Positions 5,531-40,000 of a stretch of 64,000 bases of DNA are shown in pieces. Below the pieces are notes generated by a model. That model saw only the letters and a list, made by a program, of their open reading frames with translations. It had not been told where the DNA came from and ran no database searches. Every line of letters begins with the position of its first letter. Position 1 is the first letter of the stretch. Origin of the DNA: Oikopleura dioica. Its lineage: Eukaryota; Animalia; Chordata. Both the position numbers and the translations under genes were made by a program. Location of the stretch: contig OU015569.1 of NCBI GenBank assembly GCA_907165135.1, positions 6,200,001-6,264,000 of the forward strand. Direction: 5' to 3'.

Positions 5531-8019
<2,489 letters not shown>

Positions 8020-8293
8020 TCTAAACATATAAATTTGAAGGATGGTGGCCATTGCGTGATGAGATTGGTGTTACTCATTGTGTTGAAATTGAAAGAGGAA
8101 TCGAACTTTGTGGAAATTGGAATTAGCGAATGTGCGGAACAGCTCGGAAAGGCAGCTCAAGTGGCAATGATAAAAGGAAATGGAAGAAGAATTCTCGTTG
8201 GTTTGATGCTCAATTGTGAAATAGTGAAAGATAGATAAATATCAATAGTGATTTGTCATCGGAAGAAGGTCTTTTCAGTTTTATACAAATATA

Positions 8294-11200
8294 TTAGTCA
8301 GTGATTGAACATTCGACAAGCAAAGCTGCGAGTTCGATAGGCTTTTGAAAGGTATTCTTAGCTAACTTGTAGGAATTCAATTGATTGGACTAGCTAAATT
8401 TTAAGAAATGCTTAAAAATATACCCTTGCCTCTGAGTAAATGTTCATAAGCGGAACGGATCGTATTCCTTGCCGGAGCCCCTTCACAGGAAAGACAGCTA
8501 CAGCTTTGACAAGGCTTTCCCCGAACGGATCTGGTGAGGAAATAACGAATCGAAGGAACGCTAAGTCCGGGTTATGAATCGTGAGTTTCAGTTCTTTCCA
8601 ATCAAATACAGGGTTGAGGGTGTTAGCTCCTTCTTGCTAAAATTAGCCAAGGATAAGCGAAAGTAAAATATTAATCCCCACCTTAAATCGATGCTTTTGC
8701 TTGTCCGCGTCTATTCCCCAGATTTCAACGCCGTACTCAATGTTTGAGGTATTAAGACTTTGATACGTTTTCCCCAGTCCGAAGATATTCCGTCCACCAA
8801 GGATTCTAAGCTTTATTATCTGCGGATTCAGTTTGCCATAGTGGTTCGATGTTCGTTGTATTGTCTTTATGTCTTCGTAGTCTTGTTTAGAGCATGGATT
8901 GTAAGAAACAGGGATACGCACTGTGCCTTTCTCTCCAGCACCCATAGAGCTCGACAACAGGTAGTCAGGTTTGAGGACGTATCCACATCCTTGCCTCTGT
9001 GCGAATTTCGCCTATTACAAACATGGCTTTTGAACCTCTAGAAATAATTGCTTACATGATTGAGTTGCATGGCCAAATCGGGTGTTTGAAAATTAAGAGC
9101 GACCATTTGCACGCCGGCATTCCAACAAGGGATTGGATTGTAGTTTTCCGAATGTATTCGTGCTCCTTTCGGGTAGGTTCTGCTTATCTGGTAGGTGTTG
9201 TAATCGAGGAAACTGGTGATGTAAGACTCTTGCAGGTACTTTTGGATCTTAGACTCGCCGATTGAACTCATCTGGCGGAACTCCCGCTTTTCGTTCGGAA
9301 GGAGGAACTCTTCACTCCACGTTGTCGCTTGGCAGTATACGACGAGATCAGAGAGGTTTCTAGACAAACGAAGCATCTTAGGAGGCGGTTCTGACTGATG
9401 ATTGAGTGTACTCTGCTGACTCCTGTCCATAAATACAGTCAGCGCTTGGAACAAGTCCACAATTACTGTAAAAAATTGTTAAACGCCTTGTTAGAACAGT
9501 CATACGCAACTAACCTGCGTCTCCTTCTTTTTGGTTACTCTTTCCTATTCTCATTGATTTCCGATTTGCAGCATCTCTGATCGTAATAACCTGGTCAGAA
9601 GTTTGAGTAATTTCAAACGATGTGGAAAGTGTTATTTTTCCATCGTTAGCTCCTTTCAACATATCTTCTTCCTCATCTTCTTGATCGCAAACTTGGACAT
9701 AGTTAGCAGGAAACCAGCCTGAATTTATTGATTGACCAATGCATAATTCCCGATAACTGATTACCCGAGATACCGGTATTTGGATTTTTTCCAAACCACC
9801 AGTCTTTTTGGCGCTGTTCAACGTCGATGATCTTGTCGCCCGTATTGATAGATAACTCGTTGTGGTCGTCAGCCTCGTATTTGTGCAGGGCATGAACTTG
9901 AAGGCGGGAAGTGTGATCGACGTATTCCTCTCCATTATGGTCTCCTATCTCTTGAGATGTGACACGATTGACGAGCGCCCGCTCGACTGGCTCACCTAGC
10001 TCCACTCCTGAACATTTGTTTTAAGCTCACGAGGCCACAACGCTCGAGAAAACACTAGAACACTCAAAGCGCACACTAAAATGAAACAAAGGGCGTCTGA
10101 GACGTTGCGTTTTATTCACCTGACTCACAAAAGCAAACAATTAAAGTTCGTTTGCCTTCGCGAAATTCAGGAAGTGACTTATATCATTTCATTTTATAAG
10201 TTCAAAATATTAGCTGTTTTTGGTGGATTACCTTTATAAAAAGCATTTCTTCTATAGTACTCTACAAGCGCCACAAGCGAGGGAAATATCAACGAGTCCC
10301 CGAATCTGAAGGCTTGAGTTTCCTCGTCAAATATTTTCGTTATTTTGCCGTGTTTGACAGATACAGGCCCATCTCGATCGCTTCTGAAGCTGATAGCAAA
10401 CTCTTTGTCCGTTTTTTGGCGGATCAAGAAGCTTGCGTCGGTGACAGAGTCATCTCTTAACGCGCGAGCCGCATCATCACGTGAAATGTTCTGGTAGAAC
10501 CAGATCATTCGTAGATGCTGCTCCGGCACACAAACAGGATGTAGAAGGCGCAAATCGGTTTTGATCGGACAGTTTTGGTAATGCTCGATTAGTATTTCTA
10601 AACTGTCGCAAAGGGGATGATCGGAGCTGTTGTCATCCAAAAAGTAGTACGGCTCCGGTCGATCTCTGTTTACTCGTTCGCAAAATTTATTCCCTGACAT
10701 CCAAAAATAATCCGCTGGAGTTATAAGTGATAAGTTTTGACTGAATAAAATAATCAAATGACGTCAGAGCGGCGAAAACTTGGAACGGTTCCTGTAATCC
10801 TTGTGAATTCTGATGTTAACGATTTTGTTTTTGTGATAGATACAAAGAGTTGAATCTGGCTTGAATCTATTCGAGTCACGAACTAGCCATGATCCTTCCC
10901 GGCCTTCGGACTGAAGAAGCTCGTCCGTCCTCGTTCTGCTGATGTTTCCATGATACCAACTTTTGCTCTGCGTTGATTCGTCTGTCTTTTTCGAGTTCGG
11001 CGACGCAATGGGACTCGCTGAAGATGCATCGTCGAGCATACTCTCCTCGCCATTTAAGTGGGAATCAGGATCTGGGATTTTAGAAAACTGAAGCTCGCCA
11101 GTGTTTGAAAACAGATTCGCGAATTTGGGGTGATGTCGACCGTCTGCACTGATGACGTTGACTAATCCTTGGAAAGAAGAAGTTTCGTGCTCGTCATTGT

Positions 11201-13018
11201 CGTCTTTTATCTGATCATCCTTATCCGAGCTCTTGAGCTTTCTGTTTTTGATGAGTATCTTGTTCCTTAGACCAGTTTTACGGCACTTTCGGATCGTAAA
11301 AATCTACCTGAGCATCCATGGCGACGGAAGTTGCTCCTCGTTCTCATCTACAACTTCTTTGAGTAGTTTGTCCTTGAAAAGTGTTTTAAACAAGTGTGCC
11401 ATCATGTCTTGCTGCTCTATGTTGCAGTGGTTCTCGATAGAGAGTGTCAGTGGAAGATTAGTGGTGGAAAACGCGTGCTCAGCGATAGCTTCAAGAACAT
11501 CTTTCAAGGGTACAGCAGAAGTCATGGTATGGCCGTGCAAGATCTCCGGGGAGCCGTTTTTGCCGTTCCAGCAGTCAAGTTCGATGCATCTGCAGCCCTG
11601 CCGAAGAGCGCGGACGTAGCATTCAACCGAGCTCATCGAAGAGTATTGATTCCCTAACGAGTCAATAAGATGATTTATAAAAAAAGCCAAGAACAACCTG
11701 TAAGGTAAGTATTATGAGACGAATTAATCCAGTAATGGCTGAACGGAGCGGAGAGGTACTTTTCGCCGGGCTCTTCATTCACAAACTCGGGGTTCAGTAT
11801 CGAGTTGTGCTCGGAGAACAAGAAAAGGGCGAACGTGTGATGCGAAATAAATTTGCCTTCGTTTTCTTCCGCTATTAGTTGAAAAAGTCGCTCGGTTTCG
11901 TCAACCTCTGTTCCAAAGATTGAACTGAATGTTTCCCGGCTGACCATGGCTTCGCCCTTGAGCGCCTGGTCAATCGGTTTTATTTTGCCGAAGATAGAGT
12001 GGTCTTCTGCGAACTGATACTCATGCTTCGAAAGTAGAAGGTTACCGAAGCTGTTTTTGTTGTAGCCTTTTTTTGAATCGAACTCAAATGTGAGTGAGGA
12101 GCGTTTTGACTTGTCCATTCGATCCCCACGGTTTTTGAAGTAGTTTATCAGAGTAGACGGGTTTTTGATAGACTCAGATATTGGGATGTCGATTTTAGAC
12201 AGTACAACATCAATTAGTACTAACACTGTTTTCGCAGCTAGCCAAGAATAATCCATATTTGATGATATTTTTAACAAGAATAGCGCTACTGTACAATCAA
12301 CTGATCATTCTAAGAAACCACCGAAAATGTGGATCTTATCTTCATCCCTACTCGTAAAGCTTGTTTTCCCCTAAATTGAAGCTTCTTCCTCCTGTAGCTG
12401 CTAATGAGAGCTCTCTAAATACATCAGATCGTGAAACACGCTTCCAGTGGTGAAAGAGTACCTCTCAATAACTCGATCGACACGCCTAAGGAACCATTCG
12501 TCTTGCATCTCCTTGACGACTTCCTGCAATCCAGTGACCCATTCTTTAGCGACATTCTCGCCACACTGGGAGTAAAGAACGGTCAGATTGAGATTAAACT
12601 CGTCGCCGTGGTAGATGCTGAAGCAGGATGCTTTGGGCACTTTTATCATACGAAGACGATGCTTGTACCGAATTTCGACGATCTGTAGCAGATCTATGTA
12701 CCCTTCTTCTACAGTGGTGCTCCGTTCGTTCCGCCAGTAAAGGAAGCCCTTCGTCCAGCTGACATTAAACTGCCTAGTAGGAAAGCCGCCTGCCTGCAAG
12801 TCATTCACGTGCTTCGAATTGATGCGCGAGTTTTTAACAATGCCGAGGTTGTAAAACGCCGACTTTTGGAGGAGCAATTTGCTGCGCAAGTCGCAACTGC
12901 TCTCTGAAACGGCTTTCACGGGACTTCCATTTTCTGCATTTGAGCAATCGGGGTGATAACGAGATGCGCGACGGCGCCATTTCTCCGGGAAACCTTCTGT
13001 TTCACCTGATGACGTCAT
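8294..13018 (-). CDS. PLCG: Phospholipase C gamma
   Basis: Domain order is PH, EF-like, X box ([34 protein letters not shown]), two SH2 (WYHGNISR...; WFYQNISR...FLIRQK), SH3 ([14 protein letters not shown]...DWWFG...WFPANYV), Y box ([27 protein letters not shown]) and C2. A Tyr in the cSH2-SH3 linker (GEEYVD) is positioned like the regulatory Tyr of vertebrate PLCG. Confidence 0.93.
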
Positions 13019-13603: not shown

Positions 13604-14370
13604 ATGGCGTCCCCATCCCCAGGAAAGAAACGGATGGACACTGATGTCATGAAACTGATAGAAAGTCGTCACGAAGTAAGAAAACACCATTTTAATTAAG
13701 CTTTATCGAGTTCACAAGGTTAATCTAATTGGAGACAGTCTCAACTGCTTCCAGGTAAAATTCTGTGGCCCAAGTGACAGTCCATACGAAGGCGGCGTCT
13801 GGAGAATCCGCGTCGAGCTGCCCGAGAAATATCCTTTCAAGTCGCCAAGGTAATCTTTCAAAAGCCCACCTCAGAAACAAAAAACGCGTTTTAGCATCGG
13901 CTTCCTGAACAAAATCTTTCATCCGAATATCGATTTGGGCTCGGGCTCCGTCTGTCTTGATGTCATAAATCAAGTAAGTGGAGAAGCACCATTCTTTTCC
14001 ACTGCCAATTAGTTGTGTTCGAAATTAACTTTATGAATCTAGACGTGGACGCCTTTATACGACCTATCAAATATATTCGACACATTCCTGCCGCAACTGC
14101 TGATGTACCCCAACCCTCACGACCCTTTAAACGGAGACGCTGCAGGATTGTGTAAGTGAAAAATTCGTGCGCCAGACGCGTGTATATTTTGTCTCAGACC
14201 TGCACCAACCAGAAGAGTACAAAAAACGAGTCCGAGACTACGTAAGTCGGTACGCAATGGAAATGGGCGCCACAGGCGACGGAAACGGGGCGGGTGACGA
14301 CGATGATGATGAATCTTCGATAAGTGAGTGCTCATTTGACGGCGATGACAACATGGAGATGGAAATGTGA
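13604..14370 (+). CDS. UBE2H: Ubiquitin-conjugating enzyme E2 H
   Basis: Spliced translation [128 protein letters not shown], with an acidic tail. This closely follows UBE2H. Confidence 0.96.
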
Positions 14371-14900
14371 ATAACTTCTATGCGCAGAAAGAACCAAAAA
14401 TATTGTCCAGGTAAATTTACAATTTTGTGAAGCAAAGATTCCAAGCTCTATCTTCAGAAATCAGACGCGGGTTCGTCGAAGACAACCTATCAAACCAACT
14501 TTACTAACTATCAACAATCATAGTACAACAACAATGTCAATATCAAATCGAGGGAAGGAATATTACCGTCAAATGATACATTTTTATACTTTTCTTTTCC
14601 TCGCTCTTTATTCAGTTTAATAAAATGCGTAAATATGACTCCATTCCAGTTGTATCTTACAGTCATCTATGATATAATACTTATATAAAAAAATTTTAAA
14701 AGGCCAAAGACTGAATGCATAAAAAAACAAAAAGATTGAAAGGAAGTTCTCGACTATCACTAGCCAGCCTCTTAGTGAATTAGACGAGTTATCCTCCATG
14801 TTTAGGCCTCGGACGTAAAAACAAACGATTTTATCCATCCGGTAGTAGGCTCATTCAGAAGCTCTGGGCCCTCCCTCCCTGTTTCGAGTTATTTGAGTTT

Positions 14901-15374: not shown

Positions 15375-17924
15375 TTACCAAAGAAGAGCAAATAGGGCGA
15401 GGAGGGCAGAGCTAAGAATAGTAGTGGTGGCATGATTACTTCCGTCATTCTTTGGCGGGCATTTGCCAGCGGCGCATGGCATCCACTTGCTCGGGCTGCT
15501 TGGGAAGTCTTTATGATAATCTTTGTTAGCTTCGTCAAGGTACGCAATGAGAGGCTCGAAATATTTCTTGAGGGAGTCGGCTGACATTTTCTTGATTCCT
15601 ACTGATTCAAGGATAGTGTTGGCGTCCACTGAGTTTCCTGGTTCCAAAATTTGTCTAAAATTTGTTAGATCTCATCAATTTAATTCAGTGGGACTCACTT
15701 GAGAAGGTCACCAGCTTCTTTGCTGTCGGCAAAAGTGCATTTGTAGAGTTCTTCATTCCATCCAGCAGCCTCACACATCTTCTCGTAAAATTGGAACTGG
15801 AGAATGTGGGAGACGAAATATCGGATGTAAGGAGTGTTGTTAGGAATGTGGAATTTGGCAGCAGCATCGAAGTTCTCACCGTCATCCCGTTCTACTGGAG
15901 GGACGATTCCCTTAATTAATTTACATAATATTAATTAATACAGTTTTATTTACCTGGTACTGGTTTCGAAGTTCGGTCCAGCTCTTCTGGTAGTCAGCTG
16001 GCTTAGTTTCACCACTAAATACCTTCCATCGCCAAAGATCAGTGACGTAGCCAAAGGGAAGGAAACCAATCTTAGTCAAAGCGGTCTGCATCAAGTAGTT
16101 GAGGTCTGCTTCTTTGGATTCTTCGTAGCCAGATAAGAGTCCGACTGAAAACCGTAAACCGAAGATTTATAAATAAGTTCATACCATTTGTGAGATGGGC
16201 AGGAGTGTTCACGGAGAGAGCGATTGTATCACCGATAGCTTCGTGAAAGCCTGGATTGGCACCGTTTCGGAATACGATGGGCTGAGCGGCATAGTTCTGG
16301 TAATATTGAATATGACCCATTTCGTGGTGGACCGTAACGAAGTCAGAGTGAGTCTTGACGGTGCACTGCTTGATTCGGTAGTCACCCTCGGCCTCAACTG
16401 CGCTCATCGCATCACCGACAAAAAAGTCCCATGCTGAAGCATGACAGACCATATTGTCTTGTTTCTCAATTACAGATTCATTCCAGAAAGTCTGAGTCAT
16501 AGCGGGGAGTCCGAGGCCTTGGAAAAATTCATCTGCCATTTCGAACATTTGTTTTTCAGTCTTTCCTGAAAGCGCATCAGTGGCATCTGGTCGTTCACCT
16601 GCTTCTGGGTGTGGGACAACAAAGGGGTAAAGAGCACTCCAGTCCTGAGCCCACATGTTTCCGAAGATGTGTGCTGGCATAGGTTCTTTTGCGGCAACAC
16701 GTTCTTCACCATAATGAGCGTTCATGCGACCTCGGACGTAGACGAAAAGTTTCTCGTAAATTTCGCTGACTTCGCCCCAGAGCGATTCCATATTTGCTTC
16801 GAAATCGTCATCTTCATACCAAGATCTCCAGTAAGCACCAGTATCAGGGTGATCCATATCACTCGATACAACACCTTTGTTGCTTAGCTCAACAAATTGC
16901 TCGTAGCTAGCTTTTTGCTCGTTAGCAGTATTGTGCCATCCTTCCCAAAGATGTCGCATCTGCTCATAGTTATCATCGGATCCTTTGCCTGCATCAACAT
17001 ACATAATTTCTTCGATTTGGCTGAGATCGACTTCATCACCACTGTAGTCATTTTCGATTAAAACCTTCGCAGTTGAGTAGTGAGCCTGCATCTGTTGAAG
17101 AAGACCATTGTATGTTTTGAATTCTTCAGATTCAAGAGCAGCTGGCCCAACATTGAGAATCATGTCTAAAGCTCGTTCTTGAAGGAGCTCATTTTTCCAA
17201 ATTGACTCTTCATTTGGATCGGCGTGGATGTCATATCCTTTGTCAGTCTTAAAATGTGCCTTTCCACAGCTTCCAGTTTGAGTGGCCCATCGAGCGAGTT
17301 CAGCGTCAACTCGCCCAGCCTCAGCAGCATTATCATCGCTGATGTCGATATTGTTCGCCCAGTTCGCATTTGCAGAAGCTGTATAAAGTGGCTGCATGTG
17401 GACCATCCAGCTGTTAAGGAATTCGTAAGATTCTTTAACAACACATGGACCTCCAGCATTCATTCCGTTGCAAAGATCTTCTTCACAGTGCATCGAGCAA
17501 ATCTCACTATCGTTTTCAATCGTAATCTCATCTCCATTCTCGTCAGTAACGGTATCTCCTGCCTTGTAGTAGATGCATCCTTGACTGACCTCTTCGGTAT
17601 TATTTACGCATCCTCGTGTAATGATCTCGACTGAGAGCAAATTTAATTAATTATCAAAACGAAGGTAAACTTACGTGATCCATCAGAATAATTCTCCGAA
17701 AAGGCAATAACATCGGTGCCAAAGCACCCGATGTCGCTCTCGCAAGTTACAGGATTATCATTTTCGCTTATAGTTCCACAAGGGTTGACATCGTTGATTG
17801 TCTGATCAGAACATTCGTAGCATTGAAATGCTGTAACAGCCGAAGCTGACGTTGCAGCAACAAACTATAAATTTCGTTAGTCTCTCTGAATATTGAAAAA
17901 ACTAATGTAACTTACTAGCTTCAT
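15375..17924 (-). CDS. ACE: ACE-like peptidase (M2 family, single domain) with N-terminal Ly6/uPAR-like Cys domain and GPI-type C-terminus
   Basis: Signal peptide MKLFVAATSASAVTA; 10-Cys module FQCYEC...CSMHCEEDLCN; M2 motifs HIFGNMWAQDW, CHASAWDF, HHEMGHIQYY, GANPGFHEAIGD, AKFHIP, PYIRYF; hydrophobic terminal stretch ILSSALLALFALLW with no cytoplasmic tail. Confidence 0.92.
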
Positions 17925-18665
17925 GTTCGCAAGTGAAATTCACCCGGTAACATTTCTGTTATATAGTTCCCTGCTATAAAGCTCAACTGTTGGTAAATGG
18001 CAGACGTCGCTATAGCAAGAATGACTGGTATCGTCAGCCGTAAATGTTAATTTTAACTGCAGAGAATCTTGACGCACTTTTGCAAACATTCACCAAGAAT
18101 TTTTGGAAGCAGAACTTTGATAACTTTGGTATGTGGATTGAGGAAAGATCTGTATAGTGTAATCGTTACAAATTTATATAATCGTGTTGCTTGGAAACGG
18201 ACAGTGTCCTTGTTGCTATCACAACAATTAAGATATCATGAATGACGAGAGTAACAAGAGTTGCAAGTTATGGCGAGCGAGCAAATGGAAAGCCAACTTC
18301 GATCCGCTTCTTGTAGGAAAGATACCACGAACATATTTGCCAAGAAGAAGATGTTTTGGTATCCATATCAGGCGAACGAAGACCTGTGTCCATTTTCAAG
18401 TCCGAACAAGCTGTCGAATATTTTTATTGCTGCACATGTAAATTGAAGTTCAAAGATTTAAGGAAATGAATTCATTGATCTCGGATCGACATTATCATTT
18501 ATAGTTTAGAATCTTAACTTTAGATCGGAGTATGAATTCATTTTGCAGAGATTTTTACAGAGATTAATCTGCAAGACCCTTATTATTCTAAACGAGAGGA
18601 AAATTATTATCTCGTCGTAAAATTGAGTATTTCTCTTTCATTCTCATTTAATCAAAAGAGTCTTA

Positions 18666-19004
18666 AGGACCCCCCGTCAACAATTTTCGAAAAATCTATT
18701 TTCGGAATTTCGAAATTTTGACCCCGGAAATGGATTCTACAGGTCAAAAAACGATTTTGAGGCTACATTTTTTGGGGGTCTATCTCGACTCTAACACCCT
18801 CAAAATCGCGTTTGAAAATCAGACTTTTTGACGAAAAATGACGAAAAAGTCCCAATTTTGCTAAAATTTCAGATTTTTCTTGGTCAAAAAGTACTCCGAA
18901 CAAGTTTTTATGATAAATTGAAATTCCAGGAACGCTAAGAAGCCAAAATATGGCAATTTTGGAATTTTCGATTTTTTGAGGAAAATTGTTGACGGGGGGG
19001 TCCT
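18666..19004. mobile_element. 339-bp MITE, PIF/Harbinger (Tourist)-like
   Basis: TIRs AGGACCCCCCGTCAACAATTTTC / GAAAATTGTTGACGGGGGGGTCCT (one extra G), flanked by a TTA target-site duplication (18663-18665, 19005-19007). No coding capacity. Confidence 0.85.
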
Positions 19005-19591
19005 TTAATTAATCTCTGAATACGCATGCAGCGGAGAATCTCACCCGAAGCCAGAGTAGAGCAACATCGACCTTGACAGCTTCAAATGATGTCAAATGAT
19101 GTGTTTCCCTGTCAAAAAAGCAAAACTTTGATTTCTTGAATAAACAATTTTTCTTAAATTCGTTTCAATTATCTTTTTATACCGATAAAACTCGCTTGAA
19201 GATGTACCCTGTATCTGCTGAACTATCTTCTGAGAGATTTACGTCCCTTGGCAGCGTACCAAACAGCCCCGTTCTGAGTGATAAGATTCTAGTTATCTTT
19301 TGATCCTCTCTTGTGAGCTCATTCTTGTGCCCAGAGAAATCACAACTCACGGTATGTTCAGAACTTCAGATTTCTTCATCGTTGGCAATGGTGCTTCTCA
19401 AATTTAATGACAGTCCTTTCCAAGTGGACAGATCCTATGTAATGACCTTTTGCTTTATACAGTTTAGGGCTTTCATCGTTTTATTAAATATTTGAATTTG
19501 TTAATCAAAATTTTTTCAATTATTTGATACTATAAATCTCGTAGAAATAATAAAAACATTACAATTCCAGATTTATTAAATTATAAATAAG

Positions 19592-20118
19592 ATGCTTGGA
19601 ACAGGTGGCTGGGACATTTATGTTTCTGGAGTGAACGGTTTCGTGGGAAAAGATGGCGTCACAAAGGTATGTTCTGCGTTTCGTTCGGTCGCCAATACTA
19701 ATGGCTGGCTAGGGCGGCCTCTTTGATGCAAATACTGGAAATCCATGGTGCCAACAAGATTGTTCCAGACTGCACCCAGCTGAAGTCACCAAAATGATTA
19801 AAGCTCTCGAAGCTGGCAAGCTTGACGAGCCAATTACATGTTCCAAGGTCAAGTTCAGCATCGTCGCAATCGAAAAAGACAACACTCTGATGCATGCACT
19901 AGGCCCTAAGAACGTTCCTATGGTTATGAAAATGGTAGGATTTGACAAAGTCATAGTTAACTAATGACTGCTTGCAAGACTGAAGGAAAACGTGCGATTG
20001 TAATCGGTTTTGGCGATGAAAATTCGAATCACGGGTCAATGACGGCGGCAGTAGGTAATAAAATATGCAAATACTAACTTTCCATGCACGAGATGAATAT
20101 CATAAACCACCACCATAG
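19592..20118 (+). CDS. Divergent profilin (not in the ORF track)
   Basis: TAAG|ATG start. Exons MLGTGGWDIYVSGVNGFVGKDGVTK | (46-nt GT-AG intron 19667-19712) GGLFDANTGNPWCQQDCSRLHPAEVTKMIKALEAGKLDEPITCSKVKFSIVAIEKDNTLMHALGPKNVPMVMKM | TEGKRAIVIGFGDENSNHGSMTAAV... The WxxY and later W match profilin poly-proline-binding residues. The last exon is uncertain. Confidence 0.7.
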
Positions 20119-20425
20119 CTATGCAAATGATAAGCCCGTAAAAGTTTCCGAATGAATTTAATGTTTCTTTATGAGTAGCAAGGGAACCGTAAGATGTCGT
20201 GCCAATAAAGCGAGATCTTTACTTTTGTTCTAGAACGCACGGTGGCGTACCTCAATCCAGCTGGTTATTAATCACTCGAGAAAATAGCAGATTTATGACT
20301 CTGTTTTTGCAAAATAAAGACGAACTGTATTTATATTGGTGAAGTTTTTACTGTACAAAAGGTTGCAGGCTTTATCAGTTTGAAATTTCAAGAGGTGAAA
20401 ACGTGGTTTGATTTGGACAGCGTCA

Positions 20426-22642
20426 CTAGCCGATGTCCTGAACGTGGACATCCATCTCAATTTGAGTCAACTGTTTTTGTTTTTTGGCAATTCTAGCGCG
20501 TAGCTTTTCTTCTTCTTCTAAGTGGCCGTAGAGTTTCTGCCAACGAGACTGAAGATTCAGGCGCCTTACTAGATTTTTTCTGTTTCGCGTTAGTTGCTGA
20601 TTTATTTGTACCTGAGTGTGCAACCGCTACAATCTCAAAGACAATGACAACCCAGATGAGTACCCAAAGTCCTGCTAAGGTGGCTGTATTGTCGGAAGTC
20701 CAACGAGCCATCTTTTTCACACAGCCAACTTCATAAGCTTCTGTCATGTCACACTCGAGCCCACTTGGACAGCAAGAGCTCGGTGGCGCACACTTATTGA
20801 GATGGATCTCTTTCGCATCGCAAAAACCGAGACTTTGAACGGCGTAGTCTGCGCGTGAAAGCACTCCACAGCAGCGAAAGTAGCTTTCGACAGTTTCAAG
20901 TGCGAAAAAACTTGAACCCGTATTTGACACTCTCATTTTGATGAAATGAAAGTACAACTGCTTTATTTTGTCCTGATAAGGATGATCAAAGATCAGTACA
21001 GAAAACAAACTATCGAAGTATATTTATTTGTGATCAACCTTTTCCTGAATGGTTTCCGCCATAGCCCACACAATTATTCCTCCGATGAAGATGCAGAGAA
21101 AAATTGCTGTCAACATCCATCCAAAGAATCGCATCATTATAACATTGCCCCGGAAGAACCCGAAGCCACCATTGAAAGAAACGACTATGGAAATCAATGC
21201 AGCCACGAGAAGAATAAATGAAGGATCCGTGATGACATTTTCTGTTTTCATCTTGGCAGTATGGAATTTGATTTGACCCATGACGCCTAGAACAAGCAGG
21301 ACAACTCCGCAAATCATCGCTAGAAAGTTGAAAGCGGTAACGACGAATCTGAAGAAAGCGACACAACAACCAGGATTTCGATAGCTCTGCTTGATATGAA
21401 TCTCTTTTTTCATCTTCTTTAGTGCACTTTTTGAGTCCTCTTCTGCTTTTGCCTGCATGGTTTCGGCAGAAATAAGTCTTTTTTGGGAGTTCATCGTCAT
21501 GGTTCGAGTTAGCTTTGAAATGTCGAATTCACCAGATGCAGGTTCTGCGCCAGGAAAAACATCCGGAAGACTGAGGTCGACTTTCTCCTGAACAAAATTT
21601 AGAATCTCATTGAAATTTTCTTAAACTTACCGTTTCGTCATTCAAAACTTGCTCATCAAACTGAACGTTACTGATAACGACTTCTACGACTTCAGGCTCT
21701 TCCTTTTCAACGATAACGTCATCGTGGACTTGAATTTGTCGTTCCACACTTAGCTTAGGCTTTGTTACTTCAATGATTGGAAGAACAACTTCTTCTTCTT
21801 CTTGCTCTTGATTAGAAGAAACTGCTCGTCCAAGAACTTCTTGTGTAGCTGCCTTGTTTGCCGCCTGGGCCATTGCGTTTGTTGCCATTTGACGGAGAGC
21901 AGCCATCACTTCTTCATTGGACATGCTAACAAATATTGTCAAGCCATGAAATCCAGGTTCAAAGAGTAGAAAAATGTGATGAAAATATAAAAAACTTACT
22001 CTCCATAGTCCTCTTCATTCAGCATAACATTAAAAGGACTGTTGTTAATCTGCTCAGCGTCAATTTCAGGTTTCTGTTCTGGCGCGGATTGTCTTCCAAG
22101 AGTTCGAACTGGAAGGGCGCTTTGAATCTCGATAGATCTAAGGTCACTGTTAATTTTTGATTTCAAGTTATTCATTGTACCTGTTAAGGTGTTCTCTTTG
22201 TGCCCCCTCAGACATAATTGCTTGAGGGTCGACAATCTCTATAGAACGAGCTCGAACAGAACTTGCTTCTTCTGACTGGTTATCATTTTTATTTTGAACT
22301 GGAGGAGGATTCTTTTTCTCTATGTTCGAAACTGTTGACTTGACAGACGGTCCTCGTGCAGAAACATCTTCGATTGCGCTCTGGAAATCAGAGAATTCAG
22401 ATATTGAAAGACCTGGCTCGTCTGGGCTCAACGGACCGGAGATACTTGCGCAAGATTTAGAATTACAGGTAATGAGTGCTTATGATCTACTAAGTTTCTT
22501 TAATCTTAATCGCACCTAAATATGGATCATCTTTTCATCGTTGTATGAACGGACTTGATTCTAAACCCATGTGCCTAGTGATCGTCGGCACTTCCGACAT
22601 GGTGTTTGCCGCTTTCGAGACATTGTCGGATATCTCGCTCAT
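20426..22642 (-). CDS. Tetraspanin with ~300-aa acidic N-terminal extension
   Basis: Four hydrophobic segments, the CCG motif (FRCCGV), PSSCC and GC in the large loop. In-frame splice junctions (ACG|GAG at ~21630/21590; GA|C at ~22010/21928) link upstream E/S/V-rich exons. The ATG at 22642 follows an AG. Confidence 0.85.
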
Positions 22643-35100: not shown

Positions 35101-36836
35101 ATGGGAGACTGGGGTGAATCTGAATACTACCAAAATAACGATTATGAAGACGACGGGGTGATTCCGGACTCGGGAATGAACAGGGAAGAAACAGAATGGG
35201 AACATTTTCTGAACAGATCGGGAAGAGAGATAATTCTCACTACAATAACGGTAAAATGATTCTTCTAGTAGCTTCAAATGATTTGAATCGAATCACTAGA
35301 TATTCTTTTTTAGCTTAAAGATGGTGAGGCCCTTGTTGAACGTCTCAAAAAAATTGACTCGTATCAGTTCAATTACTTCAAAAGCCTGTTGCGTATTTGC
35401 CGCGAGCGTCTGGAGAACATGGAGTATTGTAGGGAAAATTTCTATGATTCCGAAGAAAATTTCGAAAACTACGACGGTTAGACATTGTTCTATTTATAAT
35501 GAATTAATATCAAATTCTAGTCTATACAAGCGACGAAGAAGCGAGCGAAGAGGAGGAACTCGAAGATGAAGAATTTAAAGATCCTCGAAAGTTTTCGAAC
35601 TTAGAGAAAGTGAACCTGCAAATTTCCGTTTATCAGAATAGCATGGACTTTTCGAAATGCAAGGATCGTTTTCGGAACAATGGCGACCGTACGGAGATCC
35701 ACAGATCCTACAAGACGAACCCTGCTTTGAAGAACCGATCGGGATGGCAGTGGCTTAAATTTGAAGTTCGCAAGACGAAAAATCAGTATATTGACGGTCC
35801 TGATGAGTGGATGGAAGGGCCGAAAAGCCTCAATATTGTGTCTATCATTCCTATCGTCCATGTCTCATACACGAAGCATAGATCGCCGTTGCTTCATGGC
35901 TTTCTTTATATGTACAACAATCGCTCCAGTAAATACAATTTGAACATACCGTTCTTCCACTCGCAACATATAATCAGAATGCTTGAGTGCGAGCTATACG
36001 ATGGTTTTGTCGACTTCAAAGAAGGTATCGATAAAGATGAATGCTCTTCTTCCCAAAACTCGCTCAACATCGACTTTTGCGTTCAAAAGAGGATCATCGA
36101 TAAAAGTCTACCAATCGTTTTTATGAAGGAAATAGAAAGAGTCGGCGATAAACTAGCAAAATTGATGCGCCAAATGCGTGAGATTATAGCTACCGCTGAA
36201 CGCCCGGCGGAGGCTCCAGTTAAAACTGAGGCAGAAATCGCAAGAGAAGAAGCCGAGCGAATCATGCGAAAAAATCGAGAAGACGCAGAAGAGGCCGCAG
36301 CACGACGAGTAGCTGAGCAAACGCTGGTTAAAATGGAGGCAGATGCTAATATTCGAGCTGAGCAAACGGGTGAACAGGGTAGAGCTCAAGACAAAAGAAG
36401 ACGGGACCCTCGTTGCGCTGCAGCATTCATCACGACCTATGAAGATGAAATCGATTCCAGCCATCTTCCACGGCATCTCCCTCCAGAACTTACTCAGCAA
36501 TATTCTACTGGGTCAAGTACTGCTGGCCGCTCTGAATATAGTGCTGCCACAAACATTCCTTCAGACTGGACACCTCAGTTAGCCGCACAATATCAATGGG
36601 ACGCATCTGCTCGTCCGGCTCGCCCTGTATGGGCTTCTGATCAAGAACAGAAGCAGCATGATCGCACTGATCATAAATCTGCTGATGTTAAAACTGAAAA
36701 TGATGGATCAGAAGCTAAGGAAAATCCACGAAAAAGACGACTTGAAGATTCAGCTGATCCTTTGCGAAAAATGACACCAAGTGAACGAGTTCAATTCTAC
36801 AAAGACCTTTTAGCGCAGAAAAGTGGCAGGAAATAA
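35101..36836 (+). CDS. Hypothetical protein of about 540 aa, 78 nt downstream of QARS
   Basis: TTTAG-t-ATG start (MGDWGESEYY), two short in-frame GT-AG introns, then a ~1.3-kb terminal exon: acidic stretch, globular-looking region, coiled coil, low-complexity basic tail. No family recognised. Confidence 0.75.
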
Positions 36837-37077: not shown

Positions 37078-40000
37078 ATGCGGTTGACTTTCTGTTTATT
37101 ATTTATTTCGTTCGCTTTCGCTGGAGATCTCAAGCTTTCTGGATGGGTCAGTTGCTCGAATTGGGCTTGCGACGAGGCTATTCAAGAAGGTGTAGCAAGA
37201 CTTAACTTCATTGGGCTAAAGTCTGACGATGACGTCGACTGGCTCAAAGTTCAGTCTGGTGATACTATCGTCGTAACTGGCAAAGATGCTGGGACACTGA
37301 AAGGTGTTCCTCTTCTTCATGGACATATAAAAGGCAAAGAAGAGGACAAAGGAAGTGGCCTTTTCCCTTCGTCAGTTCTACGCGTTCTTCGGGACAAGCT
37401 TCGCCCATTGAATTCTCGTCGCTACTTCGAAGATATTCAAAATGAAAAACGTGGGATAGATACTCAAACCGAGTCCGACGATTCAAAAGCAGAAGCTAGC
37501 ACGCCACCTCCGACAACAAAAGCGCCTCCGATCGCGACCGAAGCCCCACGAGTGGATTTCAAGCTGGTTCCTCTGCAGAAAACATCCCAAATTTGGACGT
37601 GGATCGATAGCATGTTGGACGAAAGATTTGTTGACCGACTTTTACTGACGCTCAAGGATGAGCAATCTGCTCTGCTTTTGCTAGTATCATCAAGAATGGC
37701 AACACAAAAGAGTCAAGATAAACCAGAACTTCAGAGATTCCATCAGCTTGCGAAAGAAGTATCTGCGGCCGTTGAATCAGCTCACGGGATCGGCAAACGC
37801 AGAGAAAGTAGGACGCCGCCAACGCTCTCAGAACTTTCAGAACTCGCTCACAGAGTCAGTCAACTCCTCCTCGATCCATACGCCGCTACTATGTATCAAA
37901 ACTCAAAGGGCTTCGCCCCACCCAAGCTTCAAGAAGTTCGAGTCAAGTACGGTATCGCAACAGATGAAGAAGTCAACAACGTTGAAAACACTGAAAAAGT
38001 TGAAGAAAAGGAAATTCCTGATAATCGAAGTGAAGAAGCAAAGCCTGTTGAAGAAGCGACGCCTGAAGACAATTCTAACTTATCTGAAAAGTTGAATGAT
38101 ACGGACTTCATAGAGGAAAATCCCGAAGAAATTCGAATCGATTCAGAGCAGATCCAAGACTTAGACCCTATTAATGAGCCGAATGAAGTTACCCAAGATT
38201 ACCACGAAGAAGTTGTCGAGGATGTTACAGACAAGTCGCAGCCGTCACAGGATCAAGTGGAACCCGAAGACTTGGCTATCGAGCAAGACGAACAAAATGA
38301 TGCTCCGGTTGTCGAAGAAAATGAACCCGCCGCAGAAGAAACATTTGAAGACGTGGCTAAGGACGACTCTCATGTAGAAAATATTGATGAGCCTGTTGCC
38401 CAGCTTCAAGAAGCAGAGCCAACTATCGAGGACCCTGAAGGGAAACCCGAACAAAGTGAGGAGCCGCAAGTAGATGAGGCCGCTATCGATGATCCTGTCA
38501 TTGAAACCTTCGTAGATGAAGAAGTAGAGGATTCTGTGACTGAAGATGAAATCGATTTGTCCCTGCCAGAAGCTATTGGAAATGAACTTGTCGGCGAAGT
38601 ACCAGCACAGACAGGACCTCCTGAGGGTGTCGATCAGGAGGCCGAAGATCAAGAAGAAGTGATTAACCAGACTGACGAAGCTCATTTAAATGAAGATGAA
38701 GGCGGCGAAGTTGCGGAGGAAGTTGTTCCAGAAGATATTATTCACGAAGAGGAACTAATCGATGAGGTTGCTAAAAAAGTTCAAGAGCAGATCCAAGAGG
38801 GAGTTCAAGAGCAGATCCAAGAGGGAGTTCAAGAAAATACTTTGGCTGAAATTGCAGAACCTGTCGAAACAGCGACTGAAAATGAAATAGACCCGATCGT
38901 TGAGGAAGAACCTCTTCCTACCGATGTTCCTATTCTCGAAGTTGATAAAACAACTAACCAAAAGATAGAATCAGACACAGAGTTTCAAAATGATGACCTG
39001 CCTCTTGCCGTTCCTCCACTTGATTCTAATGATCCGGAGCTCACCGAAGACGGCGTTTTGGAGGGCGATATCCAGCCTGATGCTTCAGAAAAAGTTGAGG
39101 AAGCTGTTTTGGTGGAAGAAGAAAGCCAAGAAAAACTGGAGTCCGAGGAAGACTTGTTCATTGAATCTGAACCAACGATTCCAACTGAGCCTGAAGTTTT
39201 CACGGATTCCCCAGACAATGAGCCAGAAATGATTATTGATCCTGTAGAAATCATCCCTGAAGACATTCCTTTGACTGACCAAGATAATCAAGATGCTGTA
39301 AATGTCCCAGAATCTCAGGAAGAGGAGCTGGTGAAGATGCAGGATTTTGATGAAGAAGGTATGATGTAATTTAATGTGCAAACTTTGAACATTAAAGCAT
39401 GTCACATGTGCACAAAAATCTCTAGAGCAATAAATATTATTAAGTATTGAGTTTAAATTCGATTAGTTTAAAATGCGATCTATATTTTTTTGGATTCTTT
39501 ATTTAACCCTACTTTATGCGCCAGAAATTTATGAAACTATAGGATCGACAGAGCTCCACCTTGCTGATGTGCCTGAGTCCCTTGATGTTGGTGTTATCAC
39601 TCCAGAATCAGATAGTTTTAAGATAGACCCTGAAGGTAATGGCCGCTACTAAGAGCTCCTTATCCCAAATTGATAATCTAGTTCAAGTAGATGAGTCACT
39701 CGAAGCAATCGAAGATCCGCCTCATGAGGAGGACACGCCTGAACCAACCATCGAGAGCACAACTCCCTATTCCCGCGAAACGAATCCTTACCGGGAACGT
39801 GAACTGCTCAAAATGCTGGAATCGAAGCCGCTTTTATTCAAAATCACGAGTTGGATAAATGTCATGGGAGAGGAGACATTCAGCGAGTTCTGGCTCATCT
39901 ACGTGCTTCTTTCGATTTTTACCTTCTCATTCATTCGTCATTTGGCGACCATTTGCAGCGATGGAGGAATCTGTAAGTTCTGATAATTATAAATAATGCA

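Follow-up and report, generated by a model that had tools for sequence, protein, structure and literature searches.

A 64,000-nucleotide stretch of the genome of the tunicate Oikopleura dioica (contig OU015569.1, positions 6,200,001 to 6,264,000 of the forward strand; hereafter the window, whose own coordinates are used throughout) contains, on its minus strand at 15375-17924, an angiotensin-converting enzyme (ACE)-like gene in which a Cys-rich module precedes the enzyme. We confirmed that this module-ACE fusion is real, conserved and rare, and that it is undescribed in the literature searched, though its sequence is public; a search of the literature on Oikopleura ACE found no paper on this gene or fusion. 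On balance, we read the product as probably being a competent single-domain ACE of the glycosylphosphatidylinositol (GPI) type that carries an acidic, five-disulfide module of the Ly6/uPAR/Quiver kind (Ly6/uPAR domains are abbreviated LU below) at its N-terminus.

The gene model built from the window sequence has six exons and encodes a 775-aa product, and all of its introns (51, 44, 40, 43 and 44 nt) are of the GT..AG type. From the N-terminus, the product consists of a signal-like start, a 10-Cys module, a seven-residue linker, one Peptidase_M2 domain, a PCAAGKCP loop and a hydrophobic tail. The features, assigned from the gene model unless another basis is given, are as follows.

15375-17924, minus strand: whole gene XSR.g15071, identical to CAG5097426.1; the window contains the public locus L007 letter for letter
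17916-17924, minus strand: exon 1, ATG AAG CTA (MKL), followed by the donor GTAAGT
17675-17864, minus strand: exon 2, remainder of the signal peptide (aa 4-15, 17829-17864) and first half of the module (C18-S66, from 17822)
16185-17630, minus strand: exon 3, second half of the module (N121 at 17467-17469), seven-residue linker and ACE aa 129-548, unbroken
15954-16144, minus strand: exon 4, ACE aa 549-612 (Pfam M2, E=5.5e-23)
15699-15910, minus strand: exon 5, ACE aa 613-682 including KFHIPNNTPYIRYF (Pfam M2, E=4.8e-27)
15375-15654, minus strand: exon 6, stop codon included, with the end of ACE, the PCAAGKCP loop and the tail
17467-17822, minus strand, spanning the 44-nt intron 17631-17674: LU/QVR-like 10-Cys module, aa 18-121 (Pfam QVR and conserved Cys)
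16312-16326, minus strand: HEMGH zinc-binding motif with H502, E503 and H506 (alignment)
16228-16248, minus strand: FHEAIGD motif, in which E530 is the third zinc ligand (alignment)
15378-15449, minus strand: GPI-signal-like C-terminus, N752 to W775 (rule-of-thumb reading)

This spliced model, made independently of any public annotation, is 100% identical over 775 aa to the public protein P0129 (CAG5097426.1, UniRef100_A0ABN7SDF7; Oidioi.mRNA.OKI2018_I69.XSR.g15071.t1, "Angiotensin-converting enzyme", from O. dioica OKI2018_I69), and the 22.5-kb public locus L007 (OU015569.1, 12.96 Mb) lies unchanged within the window. The OKI2018_I69 assembly is described in PMC8008620, and the XSR in the gene name places the gene in the X-specific region of the Okinawa lineage. 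The Pfam record for A0ABN7SDF7 and its relatives lists PF01401 alone; the protein is thus already in GenBank and UniProt, under-annotated with a generic ACE name only. A preliminary description made from the bare sequence had given the outer coordinates 15375 and 17924 exactly, while its inner exon borders (17692-17866 and 16072-17637) were displaced by a few to ~100 bases and it had no separate entries for three downstream exons. The features it had named, namely a signal-like start, ten Cys, HEMGH, FHEAIGD, KFHIPNNTPYIRYF and a hydrophobic end, are all present. The MKL start has counterparts among the ACE relatives, in which a start of MKL, MKI or MRL is conserved. There are no tandem ACE paralogues in the window, an Rfam scan of the window gave no match, and the exon-3 open reading frame (ORF), looked up exactly as a prokaryote-style gene call, had no recorded counterpart.

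The module exons and the ACE domain form one transcript, as the preliminary description had supposed, because spliced contigs from several lineages hold both parts and because the two parts share an open exon. In the window, a single exon whose frame is open throughout encodes both the latter half of the module and the initial ~420 residues of ACE. The spliced contig L001 (Logan ERR9850558), which falls in the 90% cluster containing the Norwegian O. dioica protein CBY19731.1, covers the exon 2/3 junction (..PSGS/LEIITRGC..) and every later junction down to the stop codon. Three further contigs of ~2.5-2.8 kb from Logan and JGI (P0139, P0141 and P0152), which represent other O. dioica lineages, encode proteins of 787-791 aa with ~81% identity to the window protein, each comprising signal, module, ACE and tail. 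The cDNA contig L002/P0004, together with P0157, provides a complete 795-aa ORF with a 5' untranslated region and the same layout in a distant relative, at 47% identity. In addition, the Tara metagenome fragment L005 joins the end of such a module, in yet another sequence, to an ACE N-terminus, and the Tara scaffold L006, at 91% identity, has the same structure of exons 1, 2 and 3 as the window gene. The opposing explanation, that a separate small LU gene and an ACE gene were wrongly joined in annotation, could draw on the Norwegian model CBY19731.1/E4XLQ3 (P0130), which has 624 aa, begins with MQPLYTASA and contains no module. Against it stand the shared open-frame exon, the lack of a signal peptide in any ACE that would start inside exon 3, and the occurrence of module and ACE together in independent spliced contigs of several lineages. 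We give this artefact almost no credence, and consider it effectively refuted by the shared exon and the independent contigs.

Two observations concern the 5' ends of these sequences. P0130/E4XLQ3 lacks both the signal peptide and the entire module, which are both present in the full-length P0139 of the same 90% cluster; judging from these sequences, E4XLQ3 is probably an N-terminally truncated annotation. Between the window (17865-17924) and L006 (1-110), exon 1, intron 1 and the signal part of exon 2 are near-identical, differing by one 7-nt indel and one mismatch, while the remaining gene differs by ~10-15% at the DNA level; the L006 scaffold begins exactly at the ATG. This near-identity at the 5' end may be due to chance.

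The module comprises 104 residues with Cys at positions 18, 21, 32, 44, 50, 74, 85, 111, 115 and 120, followed by N121 (CYEC...CSMHCEEDLCN). It contains three N-glycosylation sequons and is strongly acidic, with 24 Asp or Glu residues against two Lys or Arg residues and a pI of about 4. All ten Cys and the terminal CN are kept across the full-length modules of orthologues and homologues as well as in the LU-only paralogue P0121, and the third loop tolerates length changes that keep the frame. When the module was aligned to that of the 47%-identical homologue P0004 and to that of P0121, the z-scores were 10 and 38, respectively, and in neither comparison did any of 2000 composition-preserving shuffles reach the score. 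The ratio of nonsynonymous to synonymous substitution rates (Ka/Ks) against the closest relative, the Tara scaffold L006, was 0.28 for the module and 0.145 for ACE; against the more distant L001 the values were 0.08 and 0.07, with saturated synonymous distances. From the shuffle scores, the conserved Cys and the Ka/Ks values, we conclude that the module is under constraint, which is weaker than that on the enzyme. When a profile of the module was run against 1.84 billion representative proteins, it retrieved only seven real relatives, of which the traceable ones come from O. dioica or marine plankton; this agrees with the impression, voiced in the preliminary description, that the architecture is rare. 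Word-indexed searches added nothing further: residues 1-135 of P0004 matched only themselves, and the module profile matched only five already-known relatives.

By its Cys pattern and its profile matches, the module is quite likely a divergent three-finger domain of the LU/QVR type. It shows the marks by which LU domains are recognized, namely eight to ten Cys in canonical order, an N-terminal CxxC and a C-terminal CN. In Pfam, the best match of the intact module (in P0129) is QVR, with E=2e-4 and 22.7 bits over profile positions 2-86 of 86. QVR is also the top family, over the full profile length, in P0139 (E=1.9e-4), P0141 (3e-4) and P0157 (5.7e-5), so that it leads in four orthologues that share 33-76% identity and score 22.2-24.6 bits. 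The runners-up are weak matches to Activin_recp and Toxin_TOLIP, which are both three-finger-type families. The E-value of 2e-4 was obtained only with the intact domain, via P0129; scanned as exon pieces, the first half of the module had no Pfam match and the second half matched QVR with E=0.15. As a small negative control, the Cys-rich N-termini of the ACE relatives P0012 and P0016 were scanned and gave no QVR match.

The ACE part leaves little doubt about family membership. Peptidase_M2 (PF01401) matches residues 133-728 with E=1.3e-186 and 622 bits over profile positions 6-574 of 581, and exon 3 by itself matches with E=3.2e-109; the orthologue P0002 matches the structures of the N- and C-domains of human ACE at ~1e-136. 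To map individual residues, we aligned the protein to mammalian testis-type ACE (tACE), calibrating the alignment by the HEMGH motif (H383). The reference isoform is broken after R522, and Y643 (tACE Y523) was therefore read directly in YIRYF. The zinc ligands H502, H506 and E530 and the catalytic E503 are conserved within HEMGH (502-506) and FHEAIGD (528-534). Likewise conserved are the residues that dock the C-terminus of the substrate and stabilize the transition state, Q395, H463, A464, K631, H633, Y640 and Y643, which correspond to tACE Q281, H353, A354, K511, H513, Y520 and Y523; K631, H633, Y640, R642 and Y643 all lie in KFHIPNNTPYIRYF at 631-644. Chloride site 2 is intact (Y338 and R642, corresponding to tACE Y224 and R522). 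By alignment, two of the three ACE disulfides are kept (C462-C489 and C658-C670) while the C152-C158 disulfide is missing, tACE F527 is replaced by His, and a C129/C188 pair is present throughout a clade of 12 plankton-derived ACE sequences described below. The intact M2 domain noted at the outset is thus upheld by the full-length profile match and by the retained zinc and substrate residues, and a catalytically active single-domain peptidyl-dipeptidase is the straightforward prediction from the sequence.

The N-terminus of the protein, MKLFVAATSASAVTA followed by FQ, is signal-like by inspection and consists of MK, a 13-residue h-region and V-T-A before the F, a design that is conserved in the orthologues. 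The C-terminus reads ...KNDGSNHATTT-ILSSALLALFALLW and, by the rule of thumb for GPI signals, offers N752-D-G as candidate omega, +1 and +2 residues, SNHATTT as a spacer and I762-W775 as a hydrophobic end beyond which there are no cytoplasmic residues; N752-D-G stands ten residues upstream of the hydrophobic end, which fits the rule for the omega, +1 and +2 positions. The last 14 residues have a mean Kyte-Doolittle value of 2.36, compared with -1.14 for the mammalian cytoplasmic tail. In P0139, P0141, P0152 and P0157, the design of the tail is kept though its sequence has diverged, with a Thr-rich stalk inserted before it. The predicted product would most probably be tethered to the outside of the cell through a GPI anchor.

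The alternative is that the C-terminus is a permanent transmembrane anchor devoid of a tail, or that it is cleaved off to yield a secreted enzyme. Both possibilities were raised for AnoACE7 and AnoACE9 by the authors of PMC1325048. In the Oikopleura protein, the hydrophobic stretch is only 14 residues long, includes two Ser and has no basic stop-transfer residues, the small N-D-G residues and the polar spacer precede it at the canonical distance, and it is the design rather than the sequence that the orthologues have conserved, together with the Thr-rich stalk; with these points against it, we regard the alternative as unlikely. The GPI-like layout pointed out in the preliminary description is therefore present, but it does not set the protein apart among ACEs. 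The module-less O. dioica paralogue (P0008 cluster) ends with the same kind of tail, as do ACE homologues of sea urchin, hemichordates, brittle star, crinoid, starfish, amphioxus and gastropod, whereas the mammalian ACE sequences have a transmembrane segment and a basic cytoplasmic tail instead. GPI anchors were predicted in 2005 for AnoACE9 and Drosophila ANCE-3 (PMC1325048). We rejected the tail as a special feature of this protein, since such tails are common on invertebrate ACEs and had been predicted earlier in insects.

Several results weigh against the picture of a GPI-type ACE with an LU-like module. The h-region of the putative signal is short and its hydrophobicity modest (mean Kyte-Doolittle 1.62), and in chloride site 1 (tACE R186, W485 and R489), where W604 and R608 are kept, R186 is replaced by H299. 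Most of the counter-evidence concerns the module. None of the modules reaches the QVR gathering cutoff of 27.3 bits, all falling 3-5 bits short, UPAR_LY6 was not reported in the Pfam scans, and P0121, which is the closest paralogue made of the module alone, has no QVR match. The search of 1.84 billion proteins retrieved no canonical Ly6/uPAR protein, and PDB sequence and profile searches with the module found no relevant solved structure. AlphaFold2, run on shallow alignments of 10 rows, gave pLDDT values of only 44.8 (P0121, residues 55-168) and 36.1 (P0004, residues 18-118), and a Foldseek search of the first of these low-pLDDT models against the PDB returned ribosomal proteins and neurotrophins at E>0.4, which we regard as noise. 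Finally, the loops of the module are longer than those in classical LU domains.

These results could mean that the module is a lineage-specific disulfide-rich domain whose Cys pattern arose by convergence and whose fold is other than three-finger. Such a domain would account for the uniformly sub-cutoff Pfam matches, the empty PDB searches, the small set of relatives without a canonical LU protein among them, the failure of AlphaFold to converge and the missing QVR match of P0121. It would leave as coincidences that QVR ranks first over positions 1 or 2 to 86 of 86 in four such divergent orthologues, that the next-best families are of the three-finger type as well, and that the CxxC start, the CN end and the number and order of the ten Cys all fit the LU pattern. 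It is further opposed by the other Cys-rich ACE N-termini, which do not match QVR, and by both AlphaFold2 models, which consist of all-beta hairpins although they are unreliable. We therefore hold a convergent domain to be doubtful and favor the LU/QVR-type assignment. Relative to the preliminary description, what stands is the Cys pattern and the best-matching family over the full profile; a match above the cutoff and a confident structure model did not follow.

In a maximum-likelihood tree of ACE domains, the 12 plankton-derived sequences form a fully supported clade that includes both O. dioica paralogues; its sister is a pair of further sequences and then fish ACE, as expected for tunicates. 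The four fused sequences in the tree form one group (SH-aLRT 89), within which distances reach 1.47 substitutions per site. Since the fused sequences group together yet are deeply diverged, the simplest reading of the tree is that the module was gained once and long ago, and the fusion would have arisen once within the appendicularian tunicates. It is under purifying selection in at least three cryptic lineages of O. dioica, and likewise in two or more plankton lineages that are far more distant. O. dioica also has an LU-only gene, chr2.g4081 (P0121), for a small protein whose module is 46% identical to that in the window and has the same acidic third-loop insertion. Its gene (L004) has the same phase-1 intron, placed in the Leu codon of ..G(S/Y)LE.. 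directly after G(S/Y), and this position was inferred for P0122 as well. Both the fusion and the family of modules thus seem to have originated in this plankton ACE lineage, and the sequences fit either donor direction between the LU-only gene and the fusion gene.

The second O. dioica ACE paralogue (P0166, CAG5103850.1, OKI chr1.g967; P0167, E4WTA3; ~784 aa) lacks the LU-like module, though a signal peptide, a Thr-rich stalk and a tail of the GPI kind are all there. In P0012 and P0016, two ACE relatives from JGI/ENA plankton data, we observed a different Cys-rich N-terminal module (CESNCQATNLECITSCDAGDQICVSDCNRAFVQCEENCPCFKNCYNGCPC...) that belongs to no Pfam family; by these sequences, the addition of a Cys-rich module to the N-terminus seems to have happened repeatedly to ACE in this clade. 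Amphioxus ACEs have an LDLa module ahead of the anchor. Judged from the Cys-rich modules of P0012 and P0016 and from the amphioxus LDLa, ACE is an enzyme that has picked up accessory modules more than once. As to the LU-only gene itself (P0121; L004, 6463-6960, on OKI chr2), the annotation begins with MSGSRAEY..., without a signal peptide. If translation started instead from the in-frame ATG at L004 6463, MIKHSQRIAIIFSLGSCVA would come directly before the first Cys, and the public 5' exon may for this reason be wrong.

The fusion invites comparison with mammalian fertilization. TEX101 is an LU protein, and tunicates are the sister group of vertebrates. As PMC7555588 reports with reference to Kondoh 2005, testis ACE sets GPI-anchored proteins free, and male fertility depends on it. 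One could thus imagine, in the manner of a Rosetta stone and as the preliminary description had it, that ACE and Ly6/uPAR proteins were once physical partners, that the fusion is a record of this, and that the partnership survives in mammals as testis ACE acting on TEX101. The release of GPI-anchored proteins reported in PMC7555588 speaks for this idea, as do the position of the 12-sequence O. dioica ACE clade next to fish ACE and the X-linkage of the gene in a dioecious animal. Nevertheless, the module profile search showed no detectable similarity of the module to TEX101 or vertebrate LU proteins, and the fusion was seen only in the clade containing O. dioica; the named hemichordate, echinoderm, amphioxus and vertebrate ACEs among the matches lack it, no named ascidian ACE being among them. 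Moreover, LU domains are promiscuous modules, and the nearest relative of this one is an LU-only protein of the same lineage with the same intron position. Because of this relative and the restricted distribution, a local domain gain is the better explanation, and we rate an ancestral partnership as improbable. Its strongest form, in which ACE and LU proteins would be an ancient direct surface pair in tunicates and vertebrates with the LU domain engaging the ACE lid or cleft and the Oikopleura protein would amount to a single-chain ACE-TEX101, seems to us more improbable still. If it were true, the protein would be a tractable model for the action of ACE on GPI-anchored LU proteins in fertilization. 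How testis ACE handles GPI-anchored Ly6 proteins is a question of long standing, on which the Oikopleura protein could bear.

Returning to the local gain of an LU-like module, we consider how such a protein might work. The linker between the module and ACE has only seven residues (GMNAGGP) and is followed by C129 and the first ACE helix, which C129 probably staples to C188. In solved ACE structures, the first helix (alpha-1) belongs to the lid that covers the channel for the substrate. The ACE domain is predicted from its sequence to remove C-terminal dipeptides from extracellular peptides. LU domains elsewhere bind receptors, channels and enzymes, and by analogy the three-finger-like module may act as a binding unit. 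It could dock the enzyme to a partner or substrate on the surface or in the matrix, or near a source of substrate; alternatively, it might modulate entry to the adjacent catalytic cleft. The data are compatible with docking and with gating alike.

Few peptidases have been studied as thoroughly as ACE, yet our searches brought up none that has a three-finger-type domain at its N-terminus. The fusion may be seen as a natural experiment, in which a binding or gating module was added beside the lid helices of ACE and kept over deep divergence. Should the module have a defined binding partner, a substrate or a location for ACE outside the renin-angiotensin system could come to light. Ciona has been reported to be without angiotensinogen (PMC3354321), and by analogy O. 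dioica, like other tunicates, probably lacks it. The module-less ACE paralogue of O. dioica would be a useful internal control for function.

According to public annotation, the following genes are found next to the ACE-like gene.

18044-20271, plus strand: profilin, head-to-head with the ACE-like gene and 120 bp away
20426-22642, minus strand: tetraspanin
13604-14523, plus strand: E2 ubiquitin-conjugating enzyme
5537-13018, minus strand: long PLC-gamma-like model

The head-to-head gap between the ACE start codon and the profilin gene is very short (17925-18043). The model at 5537-13018 (1781 aa) combines PI-PLC-X/Y, SH2 and SH3 domains with glutaredoxin and pyridine-nucleotide disulfide oxidoreductase domains, and it possibly represents two merged genes or an operon read as one. 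Farther away, the plus strand at 37078-39369 contains an intron-free 763-aa ORF that starts like a signal peptide; a short N-terminal domain with Cys follows, and there is a very long, acidic stretch of low complexity, in which the repeats are rich in Glu, Pro and Asp. Neither this ORF nor the preceding 408-aa ORF (35610-36836) has a match in Pfam, and both coincide with an AT skew that is strongly positive over 36-42 kb.

Compared with known systems, the Oikopleura protein is closest in its enzymatic part to human testis ACE (the C-domain) and Drosophila AnCE, with which it shares the full M2 domain, the zinc site of HEMGH plus Glu, the residues for the substrate carboxylate and the transition state, two of three disulfides and chloride site 2. 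It differs from them in the added 10-Cys module, in the absence of a type-I transmembrane segment with a cytoplasmic tail, in the loss of C152-C158, in the extra C129/C188 pair and in the replacement of R186 by His. AnoACE9 and ANCE-3 resemble it in having a hydrophobic C-terminus without a cytoplasmic tail, read as a GPI signal (PMC1325048), but they lack an LU-like N-terminal domain, and AnoACE9 has two catalytic domains. The addition of an extracellular module to an anchored ACE has parallels in amphioxus ACE with LDLa (PF00057 and PF01401 in P0030, P0051 and P0057) and in ACE2 with its collectrin-like part; those modules are C-terminal and of other folds, whereas that of Oikopleura is N-terminal and lies beside the lid helices.

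On the side of the module, the Quiver/Sleepless and Ly6/uPAR domains (QVR PF17064, UPAR_LY6) are alike in the order of the ten Cys, the terminal C-x5-CN and the all-beta prediction. LU genes typically have the domain split by a phase-1 intron, and the Oikopleura module is likewise split by a phase-1 intron, with its CxxC two residues past the predicted signal cleavage site as in LU proteins. Unlike the Quiver and Ly6 domains, it scores below the family cutoff, has longer loops and an acidic insertion in the third loop, and is followed by a 600-aa enzyme before the GPI signal. uPAR binds urokinase, and GPIHBP1, an acidic LU protein, binds lipoprotein lipase. If the analogy with these pairs holds, the Oikopleura protein would likewise combine a GPI-anchored LU domain with a hydrolase; in those two systems the partners are separate polypeptides, whereas in Oikopleura both would reside in one chain.

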